Below the pieces are notes generated by a model that was not told the DNA's origin, searched no databases, and saw only the letters and a list, made by a program, of their open reading frames with translations. Both the position numbers and the translations under genes were made by a program. Below, one piece after another: positions 13,208 through 33,633 of a stretch of 64,000 bases of DNA (position 1 is its first letter; each line of letters begins with the position of its first letter). This stretch comes from Oculina patagonica. Its lineage: Eukaryota. Location: NCBI RefSeq assembly GCF_052425735.1, contig NC_135759.1, positions 30,070,001-30,134,000 on the forward strand, in the 5' to 3' direction.

Positions 13208-14021
13208 TTTGTTTGAATGTCACGTGTACGCACTATGCTGCACTATCACTTTTCGCACAGAGACACTTTCATTATTTTACTTTTGCAACTTTCACGAGGA
13301 ATATTGAAGGCATTGTTTCATTTGTAGCTGTATGCAGCAATTAGTGTGAAGATGAAGATAAAATGAAGTGTATCAGAATTCCACAATTGTGTGGGAACGG
13401 AGTCAAAGGAAAAGTTCGACTGTTCCAATCCAACGGGTGGGATCAAGGGCTTTTGAAAATCTGCTTTTCGAAGATATAGCATGAAGAGATTGGGAGGATT
13501 GATACTCTCACTGGATGGAAGGCTATGTAATCCCACCACATGTAAGCCAACCTACCCCTCCCTTCCTCCGATGATAGGCTCACTTGTATGATAATATTTT
13601 TTAATGAATATATGAAATTCATATATTTGTACTGCGGATATACATTTTAAGCAAATGAAAGATCATCGCCTTTTTTTTTTTTTTTTCTTGTGTTGTTTAC
13701 AACCCCCCATACTGTAAAGTGTACTTTGCAGTTCATATCGATATTATTACAGATAGTCATAGACTTAGAAGAGATAACAGTCGCTATATAAAATACAGAA
13801 ACGTTTGCAACCTGACGAACGAAAGATTGAAGGGCAACTGAAGAAACAAAGCCACCTTGATTTACTACTGGATAGGAGGGAAACAGCACGAATTCTTACA
13901 AGTGAATGTCAAATTACGATTTTTTGCTTTATTTATATTTTTTAGTTTAATGTTTTTACAAATCAATTATTTATTTTTATCTCTAGGCTGTTTCCATTTG
14001 GGTCCATAACCTTTTTGCTTC

Positions 14022-15222
14022 TTAGAACTTGAGTTTTTTACTCTTGTCTTCTTTCTTGTCCTTGCTTGATTTTATTTCCTTTTTGGAAGCTTCATCATCT
14101 TCATCATCTGACTTTGCCTCCTCTGAATTGTCCTCGTAGCCTCGGATGCAGGCCCTACGTCCAAAGAACCTGTGAAGAAGAAGAAAATTTGACTAATCAG
14201 CATCTTATATTTTCAATATTGTCAATCAATAATTCTGCAAAATTAAATTTGTCATTTGCTACATTCAGAAGATAGTCAAAACAGTGCGTGAAGTGTGACT
14301 CCCCCGACATACCCAATCCGTTCTTCTGCCAATCCACCAAATCTCTTTAAACTGATCTCTTGCATCTTACACTTTAGGAAGATATGATATCTTCAAAAGT
14401 CTGTGTAATTCCCAAAGTAAAGTAGAGTAAAGAGTAATTAAAACAAGCCCGCGTTCATATAGCCCGCACGCAAACACGAAAGTGATTTTCAGATCTAAAG
14501 AACTCGAAAACTTGTGTTAACCTGAACTGCGGGTTAAAAATTTACTCAGGGACTTTAATTCCGAATTCAAGAGCTCTGAAACACATGTTTGGCATCAAGC
14601 TATGCAAATACGTAATAGCTCTTGCAGTTTTCTTTTTTTTTTAAAGAAAAATAATAACATAAAAACCCTCGCTATTCGATCAAGCACCAACATCAGCCTA
14701 CGAAGATTGGTGTTTTATAACCAGTGCTTTTTTTTGTCTTTTTCCTGGGCCCGGTTGTTCAAGGGGTGGATAAAATCACTATCCAGGGGATAAGTGTTGA
14801 CAAAAGACCACAAAACAAACTACGCTATCCATTGGATAGTGATTTATCTGGAGGATATAGCGTTATCCATCCTTTGACAACCGGGATGAGTGATGGTCTT
14901 GTGTTGTGTTATGACACACACATACTCCCATACGCGACCCAGGAACTATATATTTTTTTAGAAATTGCTATGCAAAAAACATGCACAATAGTAACAATAA
15001 CATCATACCCAACAGTCCTGCACACCAGCCCCTTTTTGCAGTAGTTGGAAACGTCTTCGGCTCTTCTGAAGAGATCAAACAAGCTTGAGTGTCCACATGT
15101 AGCTCCCTCTCCCAGCTTGGCCATGCACACACGGTTGAAGCGACTGATGTCGGGTTGCTCCCTGCAGCTTAGTTCCTCGGCGTCAGTGGAATGGCATTCG
15201 CTGTCTGAGTCACAGAATGTAC
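14022..15222 (-). CDS. Duplicated last two exons of Dkk-C (orphan or alternative 3' exons; intact)
   Basis: Exons 15222-15009 and 14169-14022 have intact splice sites and the same protein sequence as 24324-24111 / 23336-23189. No copy of exons 1-2 is present in this block. Confidence 0.7.
14748..14885. mobile_element. Short palindromic MITE (ggcccggttgttcaa...ttgacaaccggg)
   Basis: Terminal inverted repeats and internal tggata/tatcca motifs. There is a truncated duplicate at ~23860-23990 and a related decayed copy at ~36710-36850. Confidence 0.65.
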
Positions 15223-16885
15223 CTACAAATGATAATTCAGTTGAGAAATGATGGTCAAGGTATCAAAATGTTTCCTACAGAACGACTTCAGTATAATGTA
15301 GCCGCTTCTCATCGGATGTTTCGCCGGAGGCCAGGGACTATTGGCCTCACTTATCTCTTGCACCACAGTGCATACATTTATGCCGTCTACATCAGGAGTA
15401 AAAAGAAAGAGTTTGCAATTTAGTGACTCAAACATTTAATAACTTAGATTTGACCTTGGACATTTGTTTCCTTCTAAATCCATAAATAACAGTTTCTTTA
15501 AGAAAGATTCGGGTTAAATCTTGGTTGAATATCATAATTATTGTAAACGAAATTTCAATATGAAAAATTTTATCCGCATTTGCGAAAAGTCTTCAGGTGT
15601 ATTTAGTTAGGTCGCCACCTTGATTAATTATTTGGTTTATTGCAGCGAGTTTACAAATAAAGCCCTCCTTGTTCTTGCAATTTTCCAGCGTGCCGCACTT
15701 AAAAAAAAGCATTCCACACACCCAGACTCGTTGGGGTTAACCTTTACCCCAAAGTGGGAAGTTACGGCAATGGTATTTACTGTCGCTGCCCAAATAAAGT
15801 CCAAACCAAATTTCAACCACTTTGCCAACGTTCGCGAAGTAAAACAGAGGAATAAATGCTTTGGGAGGGGAGAGTGTGTTTTGTACATTCGCCAGTTGAC
15901 AATAAATGTCTGTTACCGACAAGGAACTAACCAAAAGGATATTTCTGTTTCTCGGACCCAACATGACAAGTTACATTGAGACTGTTCAAGTGCAATTAAC
16001 TACAGCAAAATGAAATCCAAAGCCCAGGAGCTGATTATGTTCTAATTACCGATTTGCCTCAAAAAAAGTTGGCACAAATGTTAGATGTAACGTGTATGGT
16101 CATCAAATAACCATCTTCTGTCCAAATTATGGGGATCTCCTACACTAATGGCCATGACTGTTATGGGAATGAACCGTTTATACGGTATGGGTTGCAGCGA
16201 CTTGTAGCAGGGACAAAAACACAACATGTACATACACAAGAACGTGTAACGGGAACATGTTGTAGCGATATGTCCCCTGCTATATGTCTTCGCTACATTT
16301 TCTTTAGTGTGTACGTGTTGTGATTTTGTCCCTGAATTTATCATATGACCCTCTGTGTGTCGGGACATCTATTTTTTGACCCAGGCCACCTATTGGTGTG
16401 ACTATTGCTATCTTCAGGCATTTTTTCATATCAAATAAATCATGGTCTTGTATGGCAAAACTCAAAGCTACTACTCAAAGGATATTTTTAAAATTTAGTT
16501 GTAGCCAATAGTATTTCGACAACTTAGTTTGCTTAACATGAGCTATTAAAATGGAGAACATTATTTTTCACGTCCTGAAAACCTATATTTTGCCACTATC
16601 CGAAGGCTTTATTCTTAGAGCAGGTGCAAACACCTATACAAATAGTTTTGACAAAGGATTATTAAATATTCTATTAAGCAAAAACAGATGGTTCTTCAAC
16701 ACGCTGTAGTCTTTTTCAAGAAAAGCAACTTTATTTACTCGTGTTATAAACCTTTGGCCTATCGGTTGTTCGAAATCTAGTCTAATTAACCATAAAAACG
16801 CAACTTGCACATAAAAAAACCTAAAAGAATAACTTTTTTCCTTACTAACATTACGTGCTATTAGCTACGCTTACAGTAGGTAGTT

Positions 16886-17764
16886 TTATTCGGTGTTCTT
16901 ACATAGCATTTCTCTTGCTGTCTTTATGACTGCCGTTCGAAGCTCGCGAAGACGCCAGCAATATAAAAATGGGTTTATGGACGAATTCAAAAATACTGCA
17001 GTATCGCTTAAGTTCCAAGCAACTGTCCAGCGATCGTAGAAGAAAAATAAAATTGTCATGGAAATAAATAGCGGTGTATAACAAAGAATCATCACAATGT
17101 AATATATAAAAGTGTTTTTGGCACTTTTTACTGATCGTTGTATGTTGCTTTCGTCATTTAAACTTCCAACAGCGTTTTGTTGAGCGAGGATTTGTAACTG
17201 ATGCCGACGAACAATGAAATAAATTCTGACATAACAAACAGTAGAAAGCAAGAGATAAATAGGAATGCTTACAGCTGCAAGAAAATAATAAGCAGTTATT
17301 TTCCAAAAAGCAAGAAATGATACAAGGAAGGTAAACAACCAAAGGGTTATTATGGTATACTTTGCACGATGTATGGTCACCATATCTGGATATCGCATGT
17401 GATAGTGAAGAGCCAGGAATCGATCCAAACTTATGACTGTTATTGTACCAAGAGAGACACCGACTCCATTAACAGACATCGCGATCATTAGCTCGTACAA
17501 GGAACTAAATTTTGTTAATTCATATGCAATGTAAAGCGGTTGCACGATAAAGCCAACGAAAAGATCAGACACAGCCAGACTGCAGAGGAACAATATGGAC
17601 GGTGAGTTCAGTGAAGGGGTTCTCAATATGGCAGCCAACACCAGTGAATTTCCAATAATGGATATGAGCATCAGTGGAGCATTAAAGATGCAGTTTATGA
17701 TCACAATAGTTTCAGGACGATAGTTGCTCTCCTTAAGCTGATCAATTTCTGTCATGTTTTCCAT
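16886..17764 (-). CDS. Class A GPCR (adenosine/melanocortin-receptor-like), paralog A, copy 1
   Basis: Intronless 292-aa ORF with 7 hydrophobic segments and the motifs GN (TM1), LAVSD (TM2), DRF (TM3), CYTP (TM6) and NPFLY (TM7). Confidence 0.93.
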   Translation of the reverse strand: MENMTEIDQLKESNYRPETIVIINCIFNAPLMLISIIGNSLVLAAILRTPSLNSPSILFLCSLAVSDLFVGFIVQPLYIAYELTKFSSLYELMIAMSVNGVGVSLGTITVISLDRFLALHYHMRYPDMVTIHRAKYTIITLWLFTFLVSFLAFWKITAYYFLAAVSIPIYLLLSTVCYVRIYFIVRRHQLQILAQQNAVGSLNDESNIQRSVKSAKNTFIYYIVMILCYTPLFISMTILFFFYDRWTVAWNLSDTAVFLNSSINPFLYCWRLRELRTAVIKTAREMLCKNTE

Positions 17765-19206
17765 CCTCTTTTATAAAGTTTCAAAATACTTAAGGGCGCG
17801 GTTTACGTGCAATGTTGAGTTTTTGCCGAAAACTAAGCATATAAGAGAAATATATTCCACCAATAAACGTAGTGTTTGTAATCCATTTAAGCTCTTTAGG
17901 TTAAGAAAGGGTTAATGGATTGTTGCCAGTGCCAAAATTTAAATGGTAGTTTGCTAATTAATTCCTGGACATTTTATGAATCGCGCCACGCGTAGAATGG
18001 ACGACATTCAGGTTAAAAACGTTATATCGGAAATCAAGGATTTTCAAAGTTCACTGCTACGAGTGGCACATTTAAAATAAAATAATATTTAAAAATGTGT
18101 TCTCTTACTATAAAGGTTTAACTACTGAGCAGATGTTTTTTTTTTTTAATTCCCAGGAAACTAATCTCTGAGATTATAATGTAGAAATTGTTTCTAGAGT
18201 TGTTTACTTAAGACCAATAGAAAATTATCATTTTTTGACATTCCGCTTCTTTTTGTTAGGAATTTCTTTACATGATACTTTCTGTCCAAAAAAATATTTT
18301 TTGTATTTTTGGGGCCCCGCAAAATACCAATCTACATATCTCGTTATTATTTTCCTGTGGCCATTTGCAATATCACTGGCATTTCTAATGCTTGATATTA
18401 CGAATATTTAACTTCAACTAGCTATCTAGATGTTTCTATTATTTTTTCATCCTAGCCATCATGCACTAAAGAAATTACTGTTATATAATATTCTTTGATC
18501 TGCACTTTCAGGTCGCGCAAGGTCAACGTCCAGAATATTTGTTAAGTCGGTTTTAGAGAGTTGGGCCTGTGCCTGGCACGTTTTTGCTGCGTTGCATGTC
18601 TCTGACGCATTTCCTTCTGTGTGGACCTGTCGTGATTTCGTCCCTGCAACATGTCTCGTATTCAGGGACCTTCATTTTTTGATCCAAATGTTCGGTTTGA
18701 CTAATGCTATCTTCAGGGATCTTTAATATCAAGGAAAATGGTATTGCATATCTCGCTTGATGGCAGAACTCAAAATCGTTATTTACAGGACAATTTTTCA
18801 TTTTAGTTGTAGCCAATAGTATTCCGACAACTAATTTTGGCCTACACGAGCTGAGCAAGTGGTAGACCGTCTATTGACATTATTTTTACCGCCCTAAGGA
18901 CCTATATTTCGCTATTATGCGAAGGCTTTATTCTTAGAGCAGGTGCTAAACAACTGATACAATAAGTTTTAGAATAACAAAAGATTGTGCCGCGACAAAA
19001 TTAACTAAAATATTCTTTTTAGAAATAAAAGAGGGGAGAGAGGGTTGCGCAATCCACTGTAGTCTTAGTAGTTAGTAGTGCAATAACTGTTCAGTGCTTT
19101 AATAATCTGGAATAATTAACCACAAAAACGAAACATGCTAACTAAAAATAAACACCTAAACAAATAACATGTCTTCTTTACTAACTTGACGTGCTATTAG
19201 CTGCGC

Positions 19207-20100
19207 TTAGCTAGGGAAGTTTCCTTCTGTCCTCTTACATGACATTTTCTTTGCTGTCTTTATGACTGCCGTTCGAAGCTCGCGAAGGCGCCAGCAATAT
19301 AAAAATGGATTAATAGACGAATTCATAAATGCAACAGTATCGGTCAAGTTCCAAGCAACTGTCCAACGATCGTAGAAAAAAAATAAAATTGTCATGGAAA
19401 TGAATAGTGGTGTATAACACAAAATCATCACGATGTAATATATAAAAGTGTTTTTGGCACTTATCGCCGATGGTTGCATGTTGCTTTCGTCATTCAAACT
19501 TCCAACAGCGTTTTGTTGAGCGAGGATTTGTAACTGATGCCGACGAACAATACGATAAATTCTGACATAACAAACAGTAGAAAGCAAGAGGTGAATAGGA
19601 ATGCTTACAGCTATAACAAAATAATAAGCAGCACGTTTCCAAAGAGCAAAGAATGATACAAGGAAGTTTAACAACCAAAGAGTTGCGATAGTATACTTTG
19701 CACGATGCATGTTCACCATATTTTGATATCTCATGTGATAGTGAAGGGCCAGGAATCGATCCATACTTATGACTGTTATTGTACCAAGAGAGACACCAAC
19801 TCCGGTGACGGCGATCGTGATCATTGGCTGGTACAGGGAACTAAGTTTTGTTAATTCATATGCAATGTAAAGCGGTTGCAGAACAAGGCCAACGAAAAGA
19901 TCAGACACAGCCAGACTGCAGAGGAACAATATAGACGGTGAGTGAAGTGTAGGGGTTCTCAATATGGCAGCCAACACCAGTGAATTTCCAATAATGGATA
20001 TGAGCATCAGTGGAGCATTAAGGATGCAGTTTATGATCACAATCGTTTCAGGACGATCGTTGTTTTCCATTAGCTGACCACTTTCTGTTATGTTTTCCAT
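19207..20100 (-). CDS. Class A GPCR (adenosine/melanocortin-receptor-like), paralog B, copy 1
   Basis: Intronless 297-aa ORF with the same rhodopsin-family motifs; close paralog of A. Confidence 0.93.
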   Translation of the reverse strand: MENITESGQLMENNDRPETIVIINCILNAPLMLISIIGNSLVLAAILRTPTLHSPSILFLCSLAVSDLFVGLVLQPLYIAYELTKLSSLYQPMITIAVTGVGVSLGTITVISMDRFLALHYHMRYQNMVNMHRAKYTIATLWLLNFLVSFFALWKRAAYYFVIAVSIPIHLLLSTVCYVRIYRIVRRHQLQILAQQNAVGSLNDESNMQPSAISAKNTFIYYIVMILCYTPLFISMTILFFFYDRWTVAWNLTDTVAFMNSSINPFLYCWRLRELRTAVIKTAKKMSCKRTEGNFPS

Positions 20101-20162
20101 CCTCTTTTTTAAGTTTTAGACTTAAGTTTTAGACGTGTTATGTCGAGTCAGCCGAAGACTAA

Positions 20163-20860
20163 GAATAAGGTGAAACAATTAGAATCCTGGGTTTTGTTAT
20201 CTATTTATATTTAAAATCAGGCTTAATTGTTAATGGATTGCTGTTACATCCAAAATTTTAATTTTAAATTTTGGCCGTAACAGCAAAAAGATAACAAACA
20301 ACAGATAACAAACAGATATTGACATTTAAATATGTTATTAAATTCAGTCGTGTACGTTTTTTTTCCTTTTACGCCACGCGTAGAATGGACGACGAAACTT
20401 CAAGTAACCATTAACGTAACCACTTTACTTTTTAAATTGTGGCACAGCTAAAATGAAATAATGTTTAAAATATCTTCTGTTGGTATGGTTTCGTTACAAA
20501 GTAGATGTTTTATCGCCAGATCTTTTCCCAGGAAACTAGCATTTCTAGTTTCCGAAATTAGAATAAGGTGAAACAATTAGAATCCTGGGTTTTGTTATCT
20601 ATTTATATTTATAATCAGGCTTAATTGTTAATAGATTGCTGTTACATCCAAAATTTTAATTTTAAATTTTTGCCGTAACAGCAAAAAGATAACAAACAAC
20701 AGATAACAAACAGATATTGACATTTAAATATGTTATTTAATTCAGTCGTGTACGTTTTTTTCCTTTTACGCCACGCGTAGAATGGACGACGAAACTTAAA
20801 GTAACCATTAACGTAACCACTTTACTTTTAATTGCGGCAGTAAAATGAAATAATTTTAAA
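20163..20860. repeat. Local ~400-bp tandem duplication upstream of GPCR B copy 1
   Basis: gaataaggtgaaacaattagaatcctggg starts at both 20163 and 20561; block 2 has a single copy (~29110-29520). Confidence 0.9.
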
Positions 20861-23188
20861 TTTTTTTTTTGTTTTTTTTTCGCAGTCTTTTATTTTTATT
20901 TTCCCCCCCACATTACTTTTGACGTTCCACTTCTTTTACTTGGAATATTGTTTTTACTTTTTGTTTTTACTTTTTCTGGCTTAGCCGAATAGAAAACATT
21001 TCTATTCTAAGTTGAGACGCAAACAACAGCACAGTTTATTGAAGGAGCCGCCAGCGATCGAGTTTGTTACATCAGATGAATACAAAGATATATGAGCGAA
21101 AACATAACTGAGATATTTAACAACTTTTTACCGAAGTGGAGGTGGCTAAGTGGATAAATAGTAAATAGTTGTTTTAGTAATTATATTAAAACAGTGAGAT
21201 AATATAGCACAAAAGGATGCTTTTTGACTAGTTTAAGTTATTCCTGTTGAAGATTACAATTTTCTCGCGCGCAAAGCATATTTAGAGTTTGAGTAGCCAA
21301 TCAGCGCGCGCCAAAAACATTATTTTCTCTTGACACTATCCACTGTTAAGTATATGCTAATACAGTATATGTGCTGTTAACGTTAACGGTGAAGAGAATC
21401 TAGTGAATAAACAATTTTATTATATAAACTAGAGTGTATGGTGAATTACCAGGATTTTCCTTCGCTGTGAAAAATCATATCTTTAAACTTTAGAAGATCT
21501 TTTACATGTGAAGATATTGATTTCGACACGTAACTTGCTGACGAGTTTGCCATGTTTCGATGCTGAATGAGCAATATTTATCTATATTTAGTCGAAACCT
21601 CTTCGGATCGTCTTCGGCAATCTTCGGTAATCTTCGGAATTTTTTTGGAAAAGTTTGGAAAATGTTGGGAAAGATTCCTACGACCTTCGTACAACATTTT
21701 AAAACTGATGATCTTCGGAAAATCGTCAAAAACCTCGTAACAAACAGAATCATACATGGTTGCCGTTGGAGATCTCCATGCAACCATGTATTATCCTCTA
21801 TACAACCAAAAAAAAGAGAGCGGAAAAGAACGAAAACGTGATAACAATAAAAAATTAAGCTATTACTACAGTTGAAAACAAACTTATGAAAAATACATAA
21901 ATATTATACGAAAATAAGGAAAAACTGAACAGCCTCGAGTAAACTGCTCGGCGTCAAATGGTGTGATAGTTACAAAGAGGGGCTGAAAACCAAAAGGGAA
22001 CTGCAATGTGCAATAGAAATACAACTAAAAGAAAAACATTTCACTTTTTGGTGCTCCGGCGTATTAAAATGCCAGTCTATATATTTCGTAGTTATTTCCC
22101 ATGGCCAGGTTCAATATCATTTGCATTTCAACTCATTATCTAGATTTTAGACACTTTATTGAAAAGGCGGTGCTTAAAATACAGCCTTCTATGCTTGTAT
22201 TACGTGTTTATTCTTGTCATCACGTACGAATTACTGTTAGATAGTAATCTTTGATCTGCACTTTCAGATCGTCCTTTGTTTGAGGGTTTCAAAGAGTCAG
22301 TGGGCGCGTACCTGGCACATTTTCAACAGAAAAGAGAGTGCTTACCCGACGCAAGCACCTCAAAATGACTCATCGATTTTTAACAGAACAGTAAGCATAC
22401 AGTGCAATTACGTGCCATTTATATTGCACACACAATGACAGTTTGACTTAGAATTAACGCATTCTGTGAACAAACATGTTTAATGTCACGTGTACGCACT
22501 ATGCTGCACTATCACTTTTCGCACAGAGACACTTTCATTATTTTACTTTTGCAACTTTCACGAGGAATATTGAAGGCATTGTTTCATTTGTAGCTGTATG
22601 CAGCAATTAGTGTGAAGATGAAGAAAAAGTTCGACTGTTCCAATCCAACGGGTGGGATCAAGGGCTTTTGAAAATCTGCTTTTCGAAGATATAGCATGAA
22701 GAGATTGGGAGGATTGATACTCTCACTGGATGGAAGGCTATGTAATCCCACCACATGTAAGCCAACCTACCCCTCCCTTCCTCCGATGATAGGCTCACTT
22801 GTATGAAATGAATATATGAAATTCATATATTTGTACTGCGGATATACATTTTAAGCAAATGAAAGATCATCGCCCTTGTGTTGTTTACAACCCCCCATAC
22901 TGTAAAGTGTACTTTGCAGTTCATATCGATATTATTACAGATAACAGTCGCTATATAAAATACAGAAACGTTTGCAGCCTGACGAACGAAAGATTGAAGG
23001 GCAACTGAAGAAACAAAGCCACCTTGATTTACTACTGGATAGGAGGGAAACAGCACGAATTCTTACAAGTGAATGTCAAATTACGATTTTATGCTTTATT
23101 TATATTTTTTAGTTTAATGTTTTTACAAATCAATTATTTATTTTTATCTCTAGGCTGTTTCCATTTGGGTCCATAACCTTTTTGCTTC

Positions 23189-26100
23189 TTAGAACTTGAG
23201 TTTTTTACTCTTGTCTTCTTTCTTGTCCTTGCTTGATTTTATTTCCTTTTTGGAAGCTTCATCATCTTCATCATCTGACTTTGCCTCCTCTGAATTGTCC
23301 TCGTAGCCTCGGATGCAGGCCCTACGTCCAAAGAACCTGTGAAAGAAAAATTTGACTAATCAGCATCTTATATTTTCAATATTGTCAATCAATAATTCTG
23401 CAAAATTAAATTTGTCATTTGCTACATTCAGTAGATAGTCAAAACAGTGCGTGAAGTGTGACTCCCCCGACATACCCAATCCGTTCTTCTGCCAATCCAC
23501 CAAATCTCTTTAAACTGATCTCTTGCATCTTACACTTTAGGAAGATATGATATCTTCAAAAAACAAGCCCGCGTTCATATAGCCCGCACGCAAACACGAA
23601 AGTGATTTTCAGATCTAAAGAACTCGAAAACTTGTGTTAACCTGAACTGCGGGTTAAAAATTTACTCAGAGACTTTAATTCCGAATTCAAGAGCTCTGAA
23701 ACACATGTTTGGCATCAAGCTATGCAAATACGTAATAGCTCTTGCAGTTTTTTTTAAAGAAAAATAATAACATAAAAACCCTCGCTATTCGATCAAGCAC
23801 CAACATCAGCCTACGAAGATTGGTGTTTTATAACCAGTGCTTTTTTTGTCTTTTTCCTGGGCCCGGTTGTTCAAGGCGTGGATAAAATCACTATCCAGTG
23901 GAAACGTGTTGACAAAAGACCACAAAACAAACTACGCTATCCATTGGATAGTGATTTATCTGGAGGATATAGCGTTATCCATCCTTTGAAGAGTGATGGT
24001 CTTGTGTCGTGTTATGACACACCCATACTCCCATACGTGAACCAGCGGATTTATGTATTTTGTAGAATTTCTATGCAAAAGCATGCACAATAGTAACAAT
24101 AACATCATACCCAACAGTCCTGCACACCAGCCCCTTTTTGCAGTAGTTGGACACGTCCTCGGCTCTTCTGAAGAGATCAAACAAGCTGGAGTGTCCACAC
24201 GTAGCTCCCTCCCCCAGCTTGGCCATGCACACACGGTTGAAGCGACTGATGTCGGGTTGCTCCCTGCAGCTTAGTTCCTCGGCGTCAGTGGAATGGCATT
24301 CGCTGTCTGAGTCACAGAATGTACCTACAAATAATAATTCAGTTGAAAAATGATGGTCAAGGTATCAAAAGGTTTCCTACAAAACGTCTACTGCAGGAGT
24401 AAATAGAAAGAGTTTGCAATGAAGTGACTCAAACATTTAATTACTTAGATTTGACCTTGGACATTTGTTTCCTTTTAGTAGTTATATAAATAACAGTTTT
24501 TTTAAGAAAGATCCGGGTTTGATCTTGGTTGAATATCATAATTATTGTAAACGAAACTTCAATATGGAAATTTTATCCGTATTTGCAAAAAGCCTTCAGG
24601 AGTAGTTAGGTCGCTACCTTGATTAATTATTTAGTTTATTGCAACGAGTTTACAAATAAAGCCCTCCTTGCTCTTGCAATTTTCAGCGTGCCGCACTTAA
24701 AAAAACATTCCGCACACCAAGACACGTTGGGGTTAACCTTCATCCCAAAGTAGGAAGCTACGGCAGTGGTATTTACCGTCGCTACCCAAATAAAGTCCAA
24801 ACCAAATTTCAATCCGAAATTGCCAACGTTCGCGAAGTACAACGGAGGAATAAATGCTTCTGGAACGGAGTGGGGTGTGTTTTTTGTACATTCGCCAGAT
24901 GACAATAATTGTAAGTTACCGAGGCAAGGAACTAAATATAACCAAAAGGATATTTCTGTTTCTCTGACCCAATGTGACAAGTTACACTTAGACTGTTCAA
25001 GTGCAATTAACTACAGCAAAACTGAAATCCAAACCCAGGAGCTGATTATGCTCTATAATTACAATTTGCCTCAAAGTTGGCACAAATGTTAGATGTAACG
25101 TGTATGGTCATCAAATAGCCATCTTCTGTCCAAATCATGGAGACCTCCGACACTAATGGCCATGATTGTTATGGCCATGATTGTTATGATTGCCATGATT
25201 GTTAAGTGAGTCGTTTACACGATAGGTTGCAGCGACTTGTAGCAGGGCAAAAACGCAACATGTACATACACAACAAAGTGTAGCGGGAACATTTTCAAGC
25301 GACACCTCCCCTGCTATAATACATGTCTTTGCTACATTTCTTTCTGTGTGTACGTGTTGTGATTTTTTCAGGACCTTTATTTTTGACCCACTTACTGGTG
25401 TGACTATTGCTATCTTCAGGCATCTTTCATATCAAATATATGGTCTTGTGTAACTCAGAACTCAAATCTCCTACTAACAGGACATTTTTAAAATTTAGTT
25501 GTAGCAATAGTATTTCGACTACTTAACTTGCCTAAAATGAGCTATTAAAATGGAGAACATTATGGTTTTCACGCCCTAAAAACCTATATTTTGCCATTCT
25601 CTGAAGGCTTTATTCCTAAAGCAGGTGCTAAACACCTATACAAATAGTTTTAGGATGACAAAGGCTTGTTAAATATTCTATCAAGCAAAAACAGAGGGTT
25701 GTTCAACACGCTGTAGTCTTATTCAAGAAAAGCAACTTTATTGACTCGTGCACTAATAAACCTTTATCCTATCGGTTGCACGACATGTAGTCTAATTAAC
25801 TGGTACATTAAAAAACCTAAAAGAATAACTTTTTTCCTTACTAACATTACGTGCTATTAGCTACGCTTACAGTAGGTAGTTTTATTCGGTGTTCTTACAT
25901 AACATCTTCTTTGCTGTCTTTATGACTGCCGTTCGAAGCTCGCGAAGACGCCAGCAATATAAAAATGGGTTTATGGACGAATTCAAAAATACTGCAGTAT
26001 TACTTAAGTTCCAAGCAACTGTCCAGCGATCGTAGAAGAAAAATAAAATTGTCATGGAAATAAATAGCGGTGTATAACAAAGAATCATCACAATGTAATA

Positions 26101-29100
26101 TATAAAAGTGTTTTTGGCACTTTTTACTGATCGTTGCATGTTGCTTTCGTCATTTAAACTTCCAATAGCGTGTTGTTGAGCGAGGATTTGTAACTGATGC
26201 CGACGAACAATAAAATAAATTCTGACATAACAAACAGTAGAAAGCAAGAGATAAATTGGAATGCTAAAAGCTGCAAGAAAATAATAATAAGTAATTTTCC
26301 AAAAAGCAAGAAATGATACAAGAAAGGTAAACAACCAAAGAGTTATTATGGTATACTTTGCACGATGTGTGGTCACCATATCTGGATATCGCATGTGATA
26401 GTGAAGAGCCAGGAATCGATCCATACTTATGACTGTTACTGTACCAAGAGAGACACCAACTCCATTAACGGACATCGCGATCATTAACTCATACAAGGAA
26501 CTAAATTTTGTTAATTCATATGCAATGTAAAGCGGTTGCACGATAAAGCCAACGAAAAGATCAGACACAGCCAGACTGCAGAGGAACATTATGGACGGTG
26601 AGTTCAGTGTAGGGGTTTTCAATATGGCAGCCAACACCAGTGAATTTCCAATTATGGATATGAGCATCAGTGGAGCATTAAAGATGCAGTTTATGATCAC
26701 AATAGTTTCAGGACGATAGTTGGTCTCCTTAAGCTGATCACTTTCTGTCATGTTTTCCATCCTCTTTTATAAAGTTTCAAAATACTTAAGGGCGCGGTTT
26801 ACGTGCAATGTTGAGTTTTTGCCGAAAACTAAGCATATAAGAGAAATAGATTCCACCAATGAACGTAGGGTTTGTAATCCATTTAAGCTCTTTAGGTTAA
26901 GAAAGGGTTAATGGATTGTTGCCAGTGCCAAAATTTAAATGGTAATTTGCTAATTAATTCCTGGACATTTTATGAATCGCGCCACGCGTAGAATGTACGA
27001 CATTCAGGTTAAAAACGTTATATCGTAAATCAAGGATTTTCAAAGTTCACTGCTACGAGTGGCGCATTTAAAATAAAATAATATTTAAAAATGTGTTCTC
27101 TTACTATAAAGGTTTAACTACTGAGCAGATGTTTTTTTTAATTCCCAGGAAACTAATCTCTGAGATTATAATGTAGAAATTGTTTCTAGAGTTGTTTACT
27201 TAAGACCAATAGAGAAAAAAATTATCATTTTTTGACATTCCGCTTCTTTTTGTTAGGAATTTCTTTACATGATACTTTCTGTCCAATAAAAATATTTTTT
27301 GTACATTTTTTGGTGCTCCGCCGTATTAAAATACCAATCTACATATCTCGTTATTATTGTCCTGTGGCCATTTGCAATATCACTGGCATTTCTAATGCTT
27401 GATATTACGAATATTTAACTTCAACTAGCTATCTAGATGTTTCTATTATTTTTTCATCCTAGCCATCATGCACTAAAGAAATTGCTGTTATAGTCGGTTT
27501 TAGAGAGTTGGGCCTGTGCCTGGCACGTTTTTGCTGCGTTGCATGTCTCTGACACATTTCCTTCTGTGTGGACCTGTCGTGATTTCGTCCCTGCAACATG
27601 TCTCGTATTCAGGGACCTTCATTTTTTGATCCAAATGTTCGGTTTGACTAATGCTATCTTCAGGGATCTTTAATATCAAGGAAAATGGTATTGAATATCT
27701 CGCTTGATGGCAGCACTCAAAATCGTTATTTACAGGACAATTTTTCATTTTAGTTGTAGCCAATAGTATTCCGACAACTAATTTTGGCCTACACGAGCTG
27801 AGCAAGTGGTAGACCGTCTATTGACATTATTTTTACCGCCATAAGGACCAATATTTCGCTATTATGCGAAGGCTTTATTCTTAGAGCAGGTGCTAAACAA
27901 CTGATACAATAAGTTTTAGAATAACAAAAGATTGTGCCGCTACAAAATTAACTAAAATATTCTTTTTAGAAATAAAAGAGGGGAGAGAGGGTTGCGCAAT
28001 ACACTGTAGTCTTAGTAGTTAGTAGTGCGATAACTGTTCAGTGCTTTAATAATCTGGAATAATTAACCACAAAAACTAAACATGCTAACTAAAAATAAAC
28101 ACCTAAACAAATAACATGTCTTCTTTACTAACTTGACGTGCTATTAGCTGCGCTTAGCTAGGGAAGTTTTCTTCCGTCCTCTTGCATAACATTTTCTTTG
28201 CTGTCTTTATGACTGCCGTTCGAAGCTCGCGAAGGCGCCAGCAATATAAAAATGGATTAATAGACGAATTCATAAATGCAACAGTATCGGTCAAGTTCCA
28301 AGCAACTGTCCAACGATCGTAGAAAAAAAATAAAATTGTCATGGAAATGAATAGTGGTGTATAACACAAAATCATCACGATGTAATATATAAAAGTGTTT
28401 TTGGCACTTTTCGCCGATGGTTGCATGTTGCTTTCGTCATTTAAATTTCCAACAGCGTGTTGTTGAGCCAGGATTTGTAACTGATGCCGACGAACAATAC
28501 GATAAATTCTGACATAACAAACAGTAGAAAGCAAGAGGTGAATAGGAATGCTTACAGCAATAACAAAATAATAATAGGTAATTTTCCAAAAAGCAAAGAA
28601 TGATACAAGGAAGTTTAACAACCAAAGAGTTGCGATAGTATACTTTGCACGATGCATGGTCACCATATTCTGATATCTCATGTGATAGTGAAGAGCCAGG
28701 AATCGATCCAAACTTATGACTGTTATTGTACCAAGAGAGACACCAACTCCGGTGACGGCGATCGTGGTCATTGGCTGGTACAGGGAACTAAGTTTTGTTA
28801 ATTCATATGCAATGTAAAGCGGTTGCAGAACAAGGCCAACGAAAAGATCAGACACAGCCAGACTACAGAGGAACATTATAGACGGTGAGTGAAGTGTAGG
28901 GGTTCTCAATATGGCAGCCAACACCAGTGAATTTCCAATAATGGATATGAGCATCAGTGGAGCATTAAGGATGCAGTTTATGATCACAATCGTTTCAGGA
29001 CGATCGTTGTTTTTCATTAGCTGACCACTTTCTGTTATGTTTTCCATCCTCTTTTTTAAGTTTTAGACTTAAGTTTTAGACGTGTTATGTCGAGTCAGCC

Positions 29101-32100
29101 GAAGACTAAGAATACGGTGAAACAATTAGAACTTTTGGGTTTTGTTATCTATTTATATTTATAATCAGGCTTAATTGTTAATGGATTGCTGTTTCATCCA
29201 AAATTTTAATTTTAAATTTTGGCCGTAACAGCAAAAAGATAACAAACAACAGATAACAAACAGATATTGACATTTAAATATGTCAATATCTGTTTGTTAT
29301 TTAATTCAGTCGTGTACGTTTTTTTCCTTTTACGCCACGCGTAGAATGGACGACGAAACTTCAAGTAACCATTAACGTAACCACTTTACTTGTATTAAAT
29401 TGCGGCACAGCTAAAATGAAATAATGTTTAAAATATTTTTTGTTGGTACGGTTTCGTTACAAAGTAGATGTTTTATCGCCAGATCTGTTTCCAGGAAACT
29501 AGCTTTTCTCCGAAATTAAAATGTAGAAATTGTTTCTTCAGCTGCTTACAGCGCGCGCCAAAAACATTATTTTCTCTTGACACTATCCACTGTTAAGTAT
29601 ATGCTAATACAGTATATGTGCTGATAACGTTAACGGTGAAGAGAATCGAGTGAATAAACAATTTTATTATATAAACTAGAGTGAATGGTGAATTACCAGG
29701 ATTTCTTTCGCTGTGAAAAATGATATCTTTAAACTTTAAAAGATCTTTTACATGTGAAGATATTTATTTCGACACGTAACTTGCTGACGACTTTGCCATG
29801 TTTTGATGCTGAATGAGCAATATTTATCTATATTTAGTCGAAACCTCTTCGGATCGTCTTCGGCAATCTTCAGTAATCTTCGGAATTTTTGGAAAAGTTC
29901 GGAAAATGTTGGGAAACATTCCTACGACCTATACGTACAACATTTTTAAAATCTTCGGAAAATCGTCAAAAACCTCGTAATAAACAGAATCATACATGGT
30001 TGCTTGGAGATCTCCATGCAACCATGTATTATCCTCTATACAACCAAAAAGAAGAGAGCGGAAAGGAACGAAAACGTGATAACAATAAAAAATTAAGCTA
30101 TTAGAAGCTACAGTTAAAACAAACTTATTAAAAATACATAAATATTATACGAAAATAAGAAAAAACTGAACAGCCTCGAGTAAACTGCTCGGCTTCAAAT
30201 GGTGTGATAGTTACACGGAGGGGTTGAAAATCAAAAGGGAACTGCAATGTGCAATAGAAATACAACTAAAAGAAAAACATTTCACTTTTTGGTGCTCCGG
30301 CGTATTAAAATGCCAGTCTATATATTTCGTAGTTATTTCCCATGGCCAGGTTCAATATCATTTGCATTTCAACTCGTTATCTAGATTTTAGACACTTTAT
30401 TGAAAAGGCGGTGCTTAAAATACAGCCTTCTATGCTTGTATTACGTGTTTATCCTTGTCATCACGTACGAATAACTGTTAGATAGTAATCTTTGATCTGC
30501 ACTTTCAGATCGTCCTTTGTTTGAGGGTTTCAAAGAGTCAGTGGGCTCGTACCTGGCACATTTTCAACAGAAGAGATAGTAACAGGGAAAATTCATTAAA
30601 AATATATCTATATTTCAAACTAGTTCTAACCTGAACTTCCTTCGTCAGAGTTCTTTATACAGCGGCCCCAGGTACATCTATATTTGCCATCACACTGGTC
30701 CTTCTGCGTGCATGCTGCCCCATCGCTTAAACGGTCCTTACATACGCTGAAGAACGCGTCACAGTACTGCTCTTTCTTGCAGTCTGCAGATTGGGCGCAT
30801 TTCTGAAACATAAAAATACAAAATCAATTTTAAGGTTGATTTTAATCAACTTAAAAATCCTTAGTGGCCAAATAGGAATAGGAATCCTTCTTGTTCGAAC
30901 ACCGGAAAACTCCATGTAAAAGGAATGTGGGGAAAAAAGAAGGCGACAGTGTCTATATTGAATATTTGAATTTGAAGATTCACGATTGAAAAAATAACAT
31001 CCAATCAGTATTATATAAACACTTCTTATAACTAAAAAATGGGTTTTTTAAATTGGTCAGACACATCAGACTTAACTGGAAAACAACAAAAATAACACAA
31101 TAGCTAAATTGATTGTTTTGTTTAGCTGTTGATTAACTGTACAAACTGTTGCCATGGTTACGGTCAGTGTTTTATAAGATAAACCTCCAGTCGCTGTATA
31201 AGCTGGAATAACTTTCACTTATTATATGACTAGCTCCGTGAGCGGTCAAGATGAAACGAATCGCGTGCTCTGATTGGCTACCAGAGCGGTCAAGATGGAG
31301 CCATCTTGACCGCTCGGGATCGCCCGCTGTGTTCCCGCATTGAAGCAAAAAAAAAAAAAACTTTTCTGCTCCGTCGACGCTACTACAAAAAGCTTTTCCG
31401 TCGTAAACTTGAGCTATGAAACCATTTACCGAAACAACACAAATATTTTCTGCCTGTTTCTAGCGAAAGAGGGTCCTATTACAAAGAAATAGGTTTTGAA
31501 GCAAACGAGAACAAACTAATTTCAAAAACAACAAATGTTAACGAATTCCGTGAATTATATTTGCCACAACAACCAGCTATAGATACAAAAATTAAAACGC
31601 AAAGCGACTTGAAGACATGATATCGGTTTTGTTCGGTGGAAAAGGGAGAGAAGTCTGACAGTGACATACCTGAAGAATAAAGAATTCGGCAAACTTGTCG
31701 TTTGTGTAAATCTTAAAAGAGAAAGCGGTCGGCACGGCGAACCAGGCAATGTAAGCTTTTAAAACATCTTTTCACCAAAGCCTCTAACGCTCACGTCGAA
31801 TAAGGTCGGGTCGAACATTTAAATCAATGATGTAGGAAAGTTCAAGCTCTTCCCGTGAATTTATAAGTCCCAAACGCTTTCAACAATCACAATTGCAATA
31901 TTCAGCTCGAGTCACCGTGACGGCAGGCTTGCACCACTAAAGCGCCTGAAGCGAGCAAATACTCTGCAAAACGTCCAATAATCAAAAGCTGGCGGCCAGA
32001 TGGAATGGACATTCTTGTTTTAAGGCTTCAAAGTCAACGTTGATTTGCAATTTTAGCCATTTCAATATCCTTTTGAGGGTTATAAAAAAGAGGTAAATTT

Positions 32101-32321
32101 CGCTGTTGTAGCGTCGTTTTATTTCGTCTCGATTCATTCAAGAATTTGACAGTCACTCGTTAAACTTTTAAACCAATTAAATGATTTTAGCGTGCGCCAT
32201 TGATTGTGCATGCAACTGGCTTCCTTTTCAGTACTCGAAAAAAGTCATATAATAAATCCTTTATTGACCGAGCTTGTTCGGTCAAGAAGGCAGGATATTG
32301 GCCTCGTTCTTTTTTTGCGTG

Positions 32322-32354
<33 letters not shown>

Positions 32355-33633
32355 CACGCAAAAAAAAGAACTTGGCCAATATCCTGCCATCTTGACCTCA
32401 CTCTTGGTCAATAACCCATATGTATCGACGGTCGAAAACATGATTTTTCGTTTGTGATTTAAAGTCAAATTGTGTTGCTCGTTTACTTTACTCGTTCGAT
32501 TAATCAGTAATTGCACAGTCTTGGGCCGGAGAAGCCTGAAGCAGGCGGTCCGTATAACCTACACACAAGATGGTGTCACTAAAAATTAAAAACTGCTTTT
32601 TAGCTTTCTCTGAAGATTGAATGTATTTTAAAATAATTTTATTCTAATTATTTGAGACTTTCCGCTGTTAATGTAGCTATTTTCATCTTGCAAACAACGA
32701 CACTTTAACATTCTATATTTGGCGTAGCAGGTCTCTTGGCCGGTACCTGTCAAAAGCTATCAGTTTCTGAAGACCAAAAAAATATCTTATGTCATAAAGT
32801 TTGTGTAGCTAAACTGAAGAAATATTTTCGTCTTAACAGTGATTTCACCGAATAACTCTCTTTCCAATTTCTACAACACAGACTTAATTACATAAAATCA
32901 AAATCAGTCGTATTTATAAACACGATAGACAGTAAACCACCAACAGATAAACATGCTATAATCAAGGCTGTCACGTACGAGACGATGCACTTTCTCAAAG
33001 AACAAATAAAACCGTTTGAATCGTTGGCTGAAAAATCAAAATCTTATGGAAAAAACGTGTAAGAGTTAATTTACTCGATCTCTGAACACTTCTTGAAGAT
33101 TTAAGAACGCCCTAGCTTACCTGCCCATCAAGATCATCACGGAATTGCGGTCCAAATGGTCCGAAGTCGAATTCCATAGCAGATAGTAGCTTGATTTTTC
33201 CATTCTTACCCTTGGGAAGCTTGTCTTTATCAAGGGTAGTTATAGATTTGTAAATCTTGGACAGAATGTGTGGTGAGCTCTTGTTATCGGCGGATACAGT
33301 CTCCGATGTGACACTGTAAGTCTTGAACGGACCGTGAGTTGAATTTTTTGTTCTGGTCGTGGTTTTAGTCTTGCCGGGTTTACCACCATCAGCGAGCTTC
33401 TGTCCTGTGAAGAGGTTTTCCAGCTGTTCTCTTATATGAGACAGGGCACCGAAACTTGGAATCGGAATGCGGAGCGCGAAACCCGGAAATTCGCTCTTCT
33501 CTTCGGTCTCGGGTTCTTTGCTTTCTTCGACTTCCTTCTGGTCTTCAGCTAGTTCATGTTTCTTAGCCTTTTTAGCTTCAATGCATAGTGTGGTCAAAGC
33601 TAAAAGCACAAGCAAAACTATTAGCTTGTTCAT
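23189..33633 (-). CDS. DKK3-like: Dickkopf-related secreted protein (Dkk-C), 4 exons, ~348 aa, hosts two GPCR genes in intron 2
   Basis: Exons 33633-33121 (signal MNKLIVLLVLLALTTLCIEA plus long charged N-region), 30802-30631 (CRD1), 24324-24111 (CRD2: GTFCDSDSEC...CRTVG) and 23336-23189 (FFGRRACIRG..., acidic/Lys tail, TAA). Phases 0/1/2 match. Confidence 0.85.
25882..26760 (-). CDS. Class A GPCR, paralog A, copy 2 (nested in Dkk-C intron 2)
   Basis: Intronless 292-aa 7TM ORF; about 16 aa differences from 16886-17764. Confidence 0.93.
   Translation of the reverse strand: MENMTESDQLKETNYRPETIVIINCIFNAPLMLISIIGNSLVLAAILKTPTLNSPSIMFLCSLAVSDLFVGFIVQPLYIAYELTKFSSLYELMIAMSVNGVGVSLGTVTVISMDRFLALHYHMRYPDMVTTHRAKYTIITLWLFTFLVSFLAFWKITYYYFLAAFSIPIYLLLSTVCYVRIYFIVRRHQLQILAQQHAIGSLNDESNMQRSVKSAKNTFIYYIVMILCYTPLFISMTILFFFYDRWTVAWNLSNTAVFLNSSINPFLYCWRLRELRTAVIKTAKKMLCKNTE
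28154..29047 (-). CDS. Class A GPCR, paralog B, copy 2 (nested in Dkk-C intron 2)
   Basis: Intronless 297-aa 7TM ORF; about 14 aa differences from 19207-20100. Confidence 0.93.
   Translation of the reverse strand: MENITESGQLMKNNDRPETIVIINCILNAPLMLISIIGNSLVLAAILRTPTLHSPSIMFLCSLAVSDLFVGLVLQPLYIAYELTKLSSLYQPMTTIAVTGVGVSLGTITVISLDRFLALHYHMRYQNMVTMHRAKYTIATLWLLNFLVSFFAFWKITYYYFVIAVSIPIHLLLSTVCYVRIYRIVRRHQLQILAQQHAVGNLNDESNMQPSAKSAKNTFIYYIVMILCYTPLFISMTILFFFYDRWTVAWNLTDTVAFMNSSINPFLYCWRLRELRTAVIKTAKKMLCKRTEENFPS
31219..32421. mobile_element. Non-autonomous repeat with terminal hairpin (common anthozoan element)
   Basis: The left end carries gagcggtcaagatgg...ccatcttgaccgctc inverted repeats. The right end has a ~50-bp-arm hairpin at 32280-32397 (ggtcaagaaggcaggatattggcc...ggccaatatcctgccatcttgacc). 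Confidence 0.65.

Follow-up and report, generated by a model that had tools for sequence, protein, structure and literature searches.

Two receptor genes inside the CRD1-CRD2 intron of a Dickkopf-like gene of Oculina patagonica: probably an ordinary host/nested gene pair

In the genome of Oculina patagonica a gene for a secreted, Dickkopf-like protein holds two receptor genes, on its own strand, in the intron between its two cysteine-rich domains (CRD1 and CRD2). The question raised by this locus is whether the nesting couples the secreted protein to the receptors, or whether one gene simply came to lie inside another. The window analysed here is the whole stretch of 64,000 nucleotides from position 30,070,001 to 30,134,000 of contig NC_135759.1 (assembly GCF_052425735.1), and all positions below are counted from its first letter.

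The host gene and its splicing

The host encodes a secreted protein and is conserved among anthozoans, being present in sea anemones as well as in corals without the guest receptor. In O. patagonica the four-exon model on the minus strand (33633-33121, 30802-30631, 24324-24111 and 23336-23189) gives a CDS of 1047 nt and a protein of 348 amino acids, whose sequence is that of the NCBI protein P0034, "uncharacterized protein LOC144644040 [Oculina patagonica]" (100% identity over 348 residues). The host gene and the receptors in it comprise the following parts:

33633-33121, minus strand: host exon 1, 171 codons, with the ATG, a signal-peptide-like start and the conserved N-terminal region; phase-0 donor CAG/gtaagc
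30802-30631, minus strand: host exon 2, 172 nt, CRD1, Dickkopf_N-like; phase 0 after a tttcag acceptor, phase-1 donor G/gttaga
30630-24325, minus strand: host intron 2, 6306 nt, with both receptor genes inside
29047-28154, minus strand: receptor B2, single-exon ORF of 297 aa, rhodopsin-type 7TM (Pfam 7tm_1, 1.1e-32)
26760-25882, minus strand: receptor A2, single-exon ORF of 292 aa, rhodopsin-type 7TM (Pfam 7tm_1, 5.5e-29)
24324-24111, minus strand: host exon 3, most of CRD2, colipase-like; tttgtag acceptor (phase 1), phase-2 donor GG/gtatga
23336-23189, minus strand: host exon 4, the last cysteine of CRD2, a charged tail and the TAA stop

In the protein a signal peptide is followed by about 150 conserved N-terminal amino acids that belong to no named family, then by CRD1, a 12-residue linker, CRD2 and the charged tail. 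Exon 1 encodes residues 1-171 of P0034, and a protein search with it returned 20 coral ORF calls, all reading into the intron, in which its conservation is 54-89%. At the junction of exons 2 and 3 the codon G/GT is rebuilt and the protein reads ...EGSSG-TFCDSDSEC..., and the G-T-F/Y-C motif found there is encoded without an intron in two paralogues in the window.

The joining of these exons was also seen in public RNA data. A contig of run X14 (1097 nt, depth 136) contains the joint of exons 3 and 4 (24109/23334), and its loose end at 24326 matches, in reverse complement, the very 3' end of exon 2 (30633-30662). Exon 2 sequence was found at the same loose end in runs X1 and X2 of another study, giving three runs from two studies, the splice from exon 2 to exon 3 being read in each case from the loose-end sequence of contigs placed on 23050-29049. 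Exon 1 (513 nt) and 170 nt of exon 2, together with some 53 nt of 5' UTR, can account for the 736 unmatched bases of the X14 contig, and the run contains 87% of the words sampled from exon 1. Uninterrupted orthologous transcripts (P0021, P0032, P0033, and L011 and L012 of Pocillopora) have the same exon order as in O. patagonica. The first-pass annotation had described a secreted Dickkopf-like host whose CRD1 and CRD2 flank the intron, exon 2 continuing in frame into the CRD2 exon at 24324-24111; this is borne out, with all coordinates and phases, by the RefSeq model, the RNA contigs and the orthologues, and the predicted joining of 30631 to 24324 by the loose ends of the three runs.

The likeness to Dickkopf proteins is of graded strength. 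Exon 2 alone matches Pfam Dickkopf_N (PF04706) with 26.5 bits, above the cut-off of 25, while the whole protein scores 20.7 bits and falls below it. CRD2 has 8 cysteines rather than the usual 10 and is missing one of the five usual disulfides; in P0024, an orthologue from further away, both the CC and the CxxC pair are present. Neither DIKK1-2-4_C nor Prokineticin was matched in Pfam by exon 3, by the CRD2 pieces of the paralogues or by the whole protein, and a profile search of PDB sequences returned no solved Dkk chain, only a chance match (E = 4). An AlphaFold model of CRD1-CRD2 (mean pLDDT 80) has as its best solved fold matches 3s2k_C and 3s8v_X, the C-terminal domain of DKK1, with target-normalised TM-scores of 0.69 and 0.67; their probability is 1.0 but E is 8e-3 and 4e-2, and MIT1, Dkk2 and colipase come next. 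The closest named Atlas clusters are Dkk3 families (score 0.82, a lead only). In layout the host is most like Dkk3, with its 12-residue linker between the CRDs and its long N- and C-terminal extensions; it differs from the Dickkopf family in the cysteine count of CRD2 and in an N-terminal region of no named family.

The nested receptors and their tandem copy

Both receptor ORFs lie wholly within intron 2 and sense to the host, as the first-pass annotation had claimed in describing two intact GPCR ORFs in the 6.3-kb CRD1/CRD2 intron; the term intronless refers here to their coding parts only. A2 and B2 are 85% identical in protein (dS 0.26). A second receptor pair is found next to the host gene, in a tandem copy of the unit that contains A2 and B2:

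13009-22339, minus strand: older-looking tandem copy of the 9.2-kb unit 22341-30580, self-BLAST identity 94-97%
20100-19207, minus strand: receptor B1, ORF intact
17764-16886, minus strand: receptor A1, ORF intact
15222-15009, minus strand: orphan exon copy ex3', differing from exon 3 at 5 sites, all synonymous
14169-14022, minus strand: orphan exon copy ex4', identical to exon 4

The RefSeq host transcript does not include the duplicated pair (20100-16886), which is as intact as A2 and B2. At four of the five sites that distinguish exon 3 from ex3' the X14 contig has the exon-3 base, with a third base at the fifth. All four receptor ORFs match Pfam PF00001 (1.1e-32, 5.5e-29, 2e-30 and 6.7e-29; 102-114 bits against a cut-off of 30.5), and their translations carry NPxxY and DRF, the latter in place of DRY. 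The dN/dS values of the guest receptors are 0.14-0.51 (0.14-0.23 for B2 against the guests of relatives), and the guest receptor is under purifying selection. Together with the four intact ORFs and with intact guests in two relatives (L014 and L015), these values point to a functional receptor product rather than a decayed insert.

RNA coverage of the receptors was low. B2 is overlapped by low-depth contigs of X1 and X2, the depth over the receptor ORFs in these runs (2-25) being similar to that over plain intron sequence, and such contigs may stem from host pre-mRNA or from carried-over DNA. At the 3' end of A2 no more than about two reads of a poly(A) library were found, in sense orientation, and X14, where host mRNA is deepest (depth 136), has hardly any coverage of the receptors.

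The family of the guest numbers at least 134 full-length members in the genome (134 scored full-length matches among 4138 first-look candidates), mostly in arrays on another chromosome, C11, and 1887 database proteins match the family at E<=1e-60. The more than 100 closest paralogues bear NCBI names assigned by automatic similarity (MSH, histamine H2, adenosine and beta-2-like) which are not prokineticin-receptor-like. This is in line with the lineage-specific expansions of orphan class A GPCRs in cnidarians, which likewise show single-exon ORFs of 290-300 aa and tandem arrays, the automatic names of the present paralogues including melanocyte-stimulating hormone receptor-like and histamine H2 receptor-like; the four copies described here differ in lying off the C11 arrays, inside or just after an unrelated gene.

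Origin of the nesting

Intron 2 contains no receptor in five more distant coral loci (L005, 0.34 kb; L003, 0.97 kb; L010, 1.0 kb; L009, 1.8 kb; L001, 2.1 kb), and the host intron is thus older than the guest. In four closer assemblies (L014, L015, L007 and L002) one sense-strand receptor occupies the same intron position, the intron being about 5.0-5.5 kb long. The guest is intact in the first two; in the other two it is broken while the host exons are intact, by a stop at codon 159 in L007, resting on one metagenome contig, and by the presence of amino acids 1-184 only in L002. The first-pass annotation had named absence of the nesting in relatives, together with uncorrelated expression, as a sign of chance insertion; such absence is not what was observed, because a subclade keeps the nesting. 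A nested gene is hard to remove, however, and conserved nesting alone therefore says little about function.

All intron guests fall in one clade (support 100/99), and every other sampled O. patagonica paralogue falls outside it. Within 10 kb of its deepest branch (P0070, L013) there are no host exons, and the clade's members other than the intron guests are not placed in their genomes. The guest subclades mirror the host tree, in which the base of that clade shows no firm branching. Such agreement between host and guest trees fits a single old insertion of the guest, which would be the most economical reading.

The account that we consider probable, with some assurance, is that of an ordinary host/nested gene pair, in which one receptor copy was inserted in a host intron and later amplified. 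The intron between CRD1 and CRD2 would be ancestral and originally short, and in the ancestor of one stony-coral subclade a single-exon copy from a very large orphan rhodopsin-type family would have landed there in sense orientation and afterwards diverged together with its host. In the Oculina line the guest would then have doubled in tandem to give A and B (dS about 0.22-0.26), and a 9.2-kb block comprising both receptors and host exons 3 and 4 would later have doubled in its turn (dS about 0.05-0.08). Transcription of the host runs through both receptor genes, which are spliced out, and the receptors would presumably use weak promoters and poly(A) sites of their own. The exon structure, the splice of exon 2 to exon 3, the intact ORFs, the retention and loss of the nesting in relatives, the size of the family and purifying selection are observed; we infer this mode of insertion, the independent transcription of the receptors and the lack of functional coupling.

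Guests without introns that lie in a long host intron, on the strand of the host, have been well described as a class. Nested genes typically arise when short young duplicates insert into long introns, and guests with the orientation of the host mostly lack introns (71.5% of the same-strand nestings of Drosophila; PMC5174743); in mammals the two orientations of nested genes are about equally common (PMC11694760). Like the pairs of Drosophila, mouse and human, the present locus has a guest with a single-exon coding region, a young copy from a large family that is confined to one intron; where the guest is missing in other species, this intron is far shorter. It differs from them in that the guest was amplified in place, the guest pair and the last two exons of the host being tandem-duplicated, and in that the host is a small gene of four exons and not a long one with many introns.

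Readings that couple host and receptors

Both forms of coupling offered by the first-pass annotation, a ligand-receptor module and a poly(A) switch, found no support in our data, the guest being one offshoot of the family of at least 134 copies. Functional coupling in general is made less likely by the greater age of the intron, by guests broken in two relatives whose host exons are intact, by the intact duplicated pair outside the host transcript, and by the low coverage of the receptors where host mRNA is deepest.

Interference between the two transcription units is unlikely in our view. The use of a receptor promoter or poly(A) site in intron 2 would here compete with elongation and splicing of the host transcript, and a cell would produce the complete CRD1-CRD2 protein or else receptor mRNA together with a truncated, CRD1-only host product. 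A precedent comes from mammals, where at some loci the host transcript is known to be polyadenylated prematurely, upstream of the nested gene (PMC11694760, PMC3192792), and deep host coverage with nearly absent receptors, as in X14, is also expected from mutual exclusion. Sense AATAAA/ATTAAA hexamers are found 104-275 nt past the stop of B2 and 140-500 nt past that of A2, but they carry no weight because 20 of them occur in 7.6 kb of AT-rich DNA. No contig or read with a host transcript ending in the intron was seen over 23050-29049, a span without the exon 2 side and covered by contigs, which cannot show 3' ends. The decay of the guest in L007 and L002 beside intact host exons also speaks against interference.

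It seems quite improbable that the sense receptors and the duplicated terminal exons form a selectable switch, with the nesting kept in the subclade for regulation and not by inertia. If this were true, whether a CRD1-CRD2 or a CRD1-only product is made would depend on intronic polyadenylation or on which acceptor is used (24324 or 15222), and would be tied to receptor expression.

Prokineticins are colipase-fold proteins that act on GPCRs, and by analogy the colipase-like host protein might be a ligand of the receptors in its own intron, with linkage keeping the pair together. Apart from this analogy only the conserved nesting in the subclade speaks for such a relation, and we give it very little credence: the host gene long predates the nesting, the nearest relatives of the guest are more than 100 paralogues with names of another kind, the guest is broken in two relatives, the duplicated pair beyond the host gene is still intact, and adjacency is the sole hint of binding.

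Hardly credible, finally, is the chimeric gene of the GenBank submitter model ACROYT_G006874, in which codons 1-112 of A2 would be joined by splicing to exons 3 and 4 of the host: the NCBI protein P0045 (231 aa) does align as A2 residues 1-112 followed by exons 3 and 4, and a phase-compatible GTATG is present in the A2 ORF at the splice point, but the joint of about 26425 to 24324 is absent from all four runs, all three loose ends at 24326 are exon 2 sequence, translation would give a receptor that breaks off after TM3, and the RefSeq model does not use it. The chimera is unsupported, and the annotation conflict at this locus is settled in favour of the four-exon RefSeq model, which is right.

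No new question on Wnt or GPCR signalling arises from the locus. Read as an ordinary host/nested gene pair, it records a short ancestral intron, one guest in a subclade, co-divergence, decay in some lines and amplification in one, and it would provide a clean and dated cnidarian example of an expanding receptor family that seeds copies into the introns of unrelated genes.

Structure and splicing of the host gene

The flanking Dickkopf-like genes aside, every gene discussed lies on the minus strand. The host gene and the receptors in its second intron are laid out as follows.

33633-33121, minus: host exon 1, with the ATG start, a hydrophobic signal-like stretch and the donor CAG/gtaagc
30802-30631, minus: host exon 2, with the acceptor tttcag, a six-cysteine domain and the phase 1 donor G/gttaga
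29047-28154, minus: receptor B2, a complete ORF of 297 aa in host intron 2
26760-25882, minus: receptor A2, a complete ORF of 292 aa in host intron 2
24324-24111, minus: host exon 3, with the acceptor tttgtag, the split codon restored as GGT, and the end GG/gtatga
23336-23189, minus: host exon 4, which restores the codon split with exon 3 and ends in TAA

The four joined exons give a coding sequence of 1047 nt (348 aa), in which a G-T-F-C motif is restored across the exon 2-exon 3 junction; two paralogues in the window encode this junction motif without an intron (GTYC at about 1617-1937, plus strand, and GTFC at 6435-6010, minus strand). Intron 2, between exons 2 and 3, measures 6306 nt, and both receptors within it match Pfam 7tm_1 far over the cut-off, which bears out the first-pass annotation of two intact sense-strand GPCR ORFs between CRD1 and CRD2. 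With exon 1 as query, unfiltered HMMER retrieved full-length spliced relatives, and a word-based search with one of these gave P0034 and P0045. P0034, the RefSeq protein "uncharacterized protein LOC144644040 [Oculina patagonica]", is identical to the four-exon translation over 348/348 residues, so that the RefSeq model equals the one proposed from the sequence.

The proposed splicing of exon 2 to exon 3 at 24324 was likewise found in public sequencing runs, four of which were mapped against 23050-29049, a stretch that ends short of the exon 2 donor. Run X14 gave a single 1097-nt contig (depth 136) over exons 4 and 3, with the joint at 24109/23334. Beyond 24326 the contig departs from the mapped stretch and reads GAACTTCCTTCGTCAGAGTTCTTTATACAG, which is the terminal part of exon 2 in reverse complement. 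Its 736 unmatched bases fit a leader of about 53 nt together with exon 1 (513 nt) and 170 nt of exon 2, and 87% of the words sampled from exon 1 are present in the run. These runs are labelled "RNA?", and X14 behaves as RNA since its coverage is exon-limited and its contig spliced. X1 and X2, from another study, have the identical loose end at 24326. The original observation is confirmed and its structural reading is correct.

P0045, the GenBank submitter model ACROYT_G006874, joins residues 1-112 of A2 (26760-26425) to host exons 3 and 4 (24324-23189). None of the four runs mapped on 23050-29049 joins a point within A2 to exon 3, and this chimeric receptor-host model is therefore without support.

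CRD1 scores 26.5 bits against Pfam Dickkopf_N as an exon alone and 20.7 bits within the whole protein (cut-off 25), and CRD2 gave no match in Pfam or PDB sequence searches. In a fold search with an AlphaFold model of CRD1-CRD2 from eight orthologues (mean pLDDT 80), the best solved matches were to the DKK1 C-terminal domain, 3s2k_C and 3s8v_X (target-normalised TM-scores 0.69 and 0.67, E = 8e-3 and 4e-2, probability 1.0), with the prokineticin-type toxin MIT1, draxin, Dkk2 and colipase next in rank. CRD2 of the coral host proteins has eight cysteines, in contrast to the ten-cysteine form, whose CC and CxxC pairs are still present in the distant orthologue P0024; read against the DKK1 disulfide map, this fits a domain that has lost one disulfide. 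The host resembles Dkk3 in its linker of 12 residues and in having long extensions at both the N and the C terminus, and its nearest named Atlas clusters are Dkk3 families (score 0.82, a lead only).

Three more Dickkopf-like genes flank the host (813-1937, plus; 6435-5295, minus; 37499-36395, minus); two of the three contain CRD2 pieces of the canonical ten-cysteine type, and their introns are placed differently from those of the host. The neighbourhood is the same in Pocillopora damicornis (L010), where a SHANK-like gene and a Dickkopf_N gene precede the host orthologue and a second Dickkopf_N gene comes after it on the opposite strand.

The tandem copy and RNA coverage of the receptors

In a self-BLAST, 13009-22339 matches 22341-30580 as a tandem copy (94-97% identity), and the repeated unit has its upstream boundary about 50 nt past the exon 2 donor. 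The minus-strand order is accordingly exon 1, exon 2, [B2, A2, exon 3, exon 4], [B1, A1, ex3', ex4']. The RefSeq host transcript does not reach the B1/A1 pair, which is as intact as A2/B2. Two orphan exons belong to the second copy.

15222-15009, minus: ex3', with five differences from exon 3, all synonymous and none non-synonymous
14169-14022, minus: ex4', identical to exon 4

The neutral chance of five all-synonymous differences is about 4e-4 to 9e-4, and the flanks of both exons are only about 94-95% alike, with indels, so that the orphan exons are better conserved than the surrounding intron. Judged from this conservation, they may still be used, perhaps as alternative terminal exons, or may have been homogenised. 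Of the five sites separating exon 3 from ex3', four have the exon 3 base in the X14 contig and one has a third base. In X1 and X2 nothing mapped on 24050-24249 at ≥97%, with a contig break about 31 nt from the first diagnostic site, whereas exon 3 is cleanly covered in a third run; the gap may reflect a mixture of exon 3 and ex3' forms, or of alleles, in that RNA.

Depth on the receptor ORFs in X1 and X2 is 2-25, similar to that on plain intron (24297-25286, 26879-27089 and 27707-27840), and host pre-mRNA or carried-over DNA would account for the depth at both. In the poly(A)-primed raw reads of X23, sense reads number about four at the 3' end of the host and about two at that of A2. Sense-strand poly(A) hexamers lie downstream of both the A2 and B2 ORFs, and carry no weight since there are 20 such hexamers in 7.6 kb. 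A short repeated element occurs at about 23857-23990, 14724-15044 and 36652-37089, its translation reading ...DSDLSGGYSVIHPL...; contigs over it have unrelated sequence beyond their loose ends (23957, 23960 and 23990), and the depth there therefore comes from copies elsewhere.

History of the nesting in corals

Coral loci around exon 1 homologues and receptor homologues were compared by mapping the O. patagonica exons and receptors onto them.

Host intron 2 and receptor content in the coral loci
L005: 0.34 kb; no receptor
L003 (Pocillopora, Tara sample): 0.97 kb; no receptor
L010 (Pocillopora damicornis, whole gene 3.4 kb): 1.0 kb; no receptor
L009: 1.8 kb; no receptor
L001: 2.1 kb; no receptor
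L014: 5.5 kb; one intact receptor, sense strand
L015: 5.05 kb; one intact receptor, sense strand
L007: contig ends short of exon 3; one full-length receptor, stop at codon 159
L008: contig ends short of exon 3; first 125 receptor codons only
L002: 2.1 kb; one receptor, residues 1-184 only, ending about 100 nt short of exon 3

In Pocillopora, the transcript contigs L011 and L012 both encode the 340-aa host orthologue without a break. In the receptor tree every intron guest falls in one clade (100/99 support) and all other sampled O. patagonica paralogues fall outside; the remaining members are database proteins. Within the clade, Oculina groups with L007, and L014 (via protein P0061) with L015 (via P0066) and L002, and the host tree contains the same two groups. 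The simplest account would be one insertion in the common ancestor of both groups, after Pocillopora and L001 had split off, with guest and host co-diverging thereafter; we infer this from the trees, in which the base of the host-tree part holding the guest-bearing groups is unresolved. The deepest branch of the clade, P0070, has no host or Dickkopf-like exons within 10 kb (L013). It is present there as two tandem copies (10001-10897 and 17886-18782), which may represent the un-nested source state of the nested receptor. The host itself is far older than the nesting, since orthologues are present in Nematostella and Actinia.

The receptor family and the reading of the nested pair

A six-frame search of the O. 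patagonica genome scored at least 134 full-length, mostly stop-free matches among 4138 first-look candidates, concentrated in arrays on another contig (16.6-17.3, 19.6-21.8 and about 23.0-23.9 Mb). These arrays are very large and consist of tandem single-exon receptor genes, most with open frames and a few with single stops. Outside the window the closest copies reach 64-68% identity, and the protein database holds 1887 relatives at E≤1e-60. NCBI automatic names of O. patagonica paralogues include melanocyte-stimulating hormone receptor-like, histamine H2 receptor-like and adenosine receptor A1-like. dN/dS is 0.14-0.33 for guests between species, 0.30-0.38 for A against B receptors (dS 0.22-0.26) and 0.33-0.51 for receptors in the two copies of the 9.2-kb duplication (dS 0.05-0.08), which indicates that the receptors are retained as coding genes, with some relaxation after recent duplications.

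The first-pass annotation had further proposed a ligand-receptor module, or a switch in which receptor poly(A) sites truncate the host. Premature host polyadenylation tied to nested genes is known at some loci (PMC11694760, PMC3192792). Either function is unsupported here, and several facts speak against them: the intron is older than the guest, which has decayed in two relatives, the B1/A1 pair has stayed intact although un-nested, the guest belongs to a huge family, and host and guest depths in X14 are discordant. About 10% of Drosophila genes are nested, 71% of these on the opposite strand; same-strand guests are mostly intronless (71.5%), and nestings usually originate from short young duplicates inserted into long introns (PMC5174743). 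Nested genes of mouse and human lie in either orientation with about equal frequency, and over a tenth of genes are involved (PMC11694760). The O. patagonica pair fits this described class in every tested respect, with the receptors as putative transcription units of their own, and the locus is a well-resolved coral example of nested genes.
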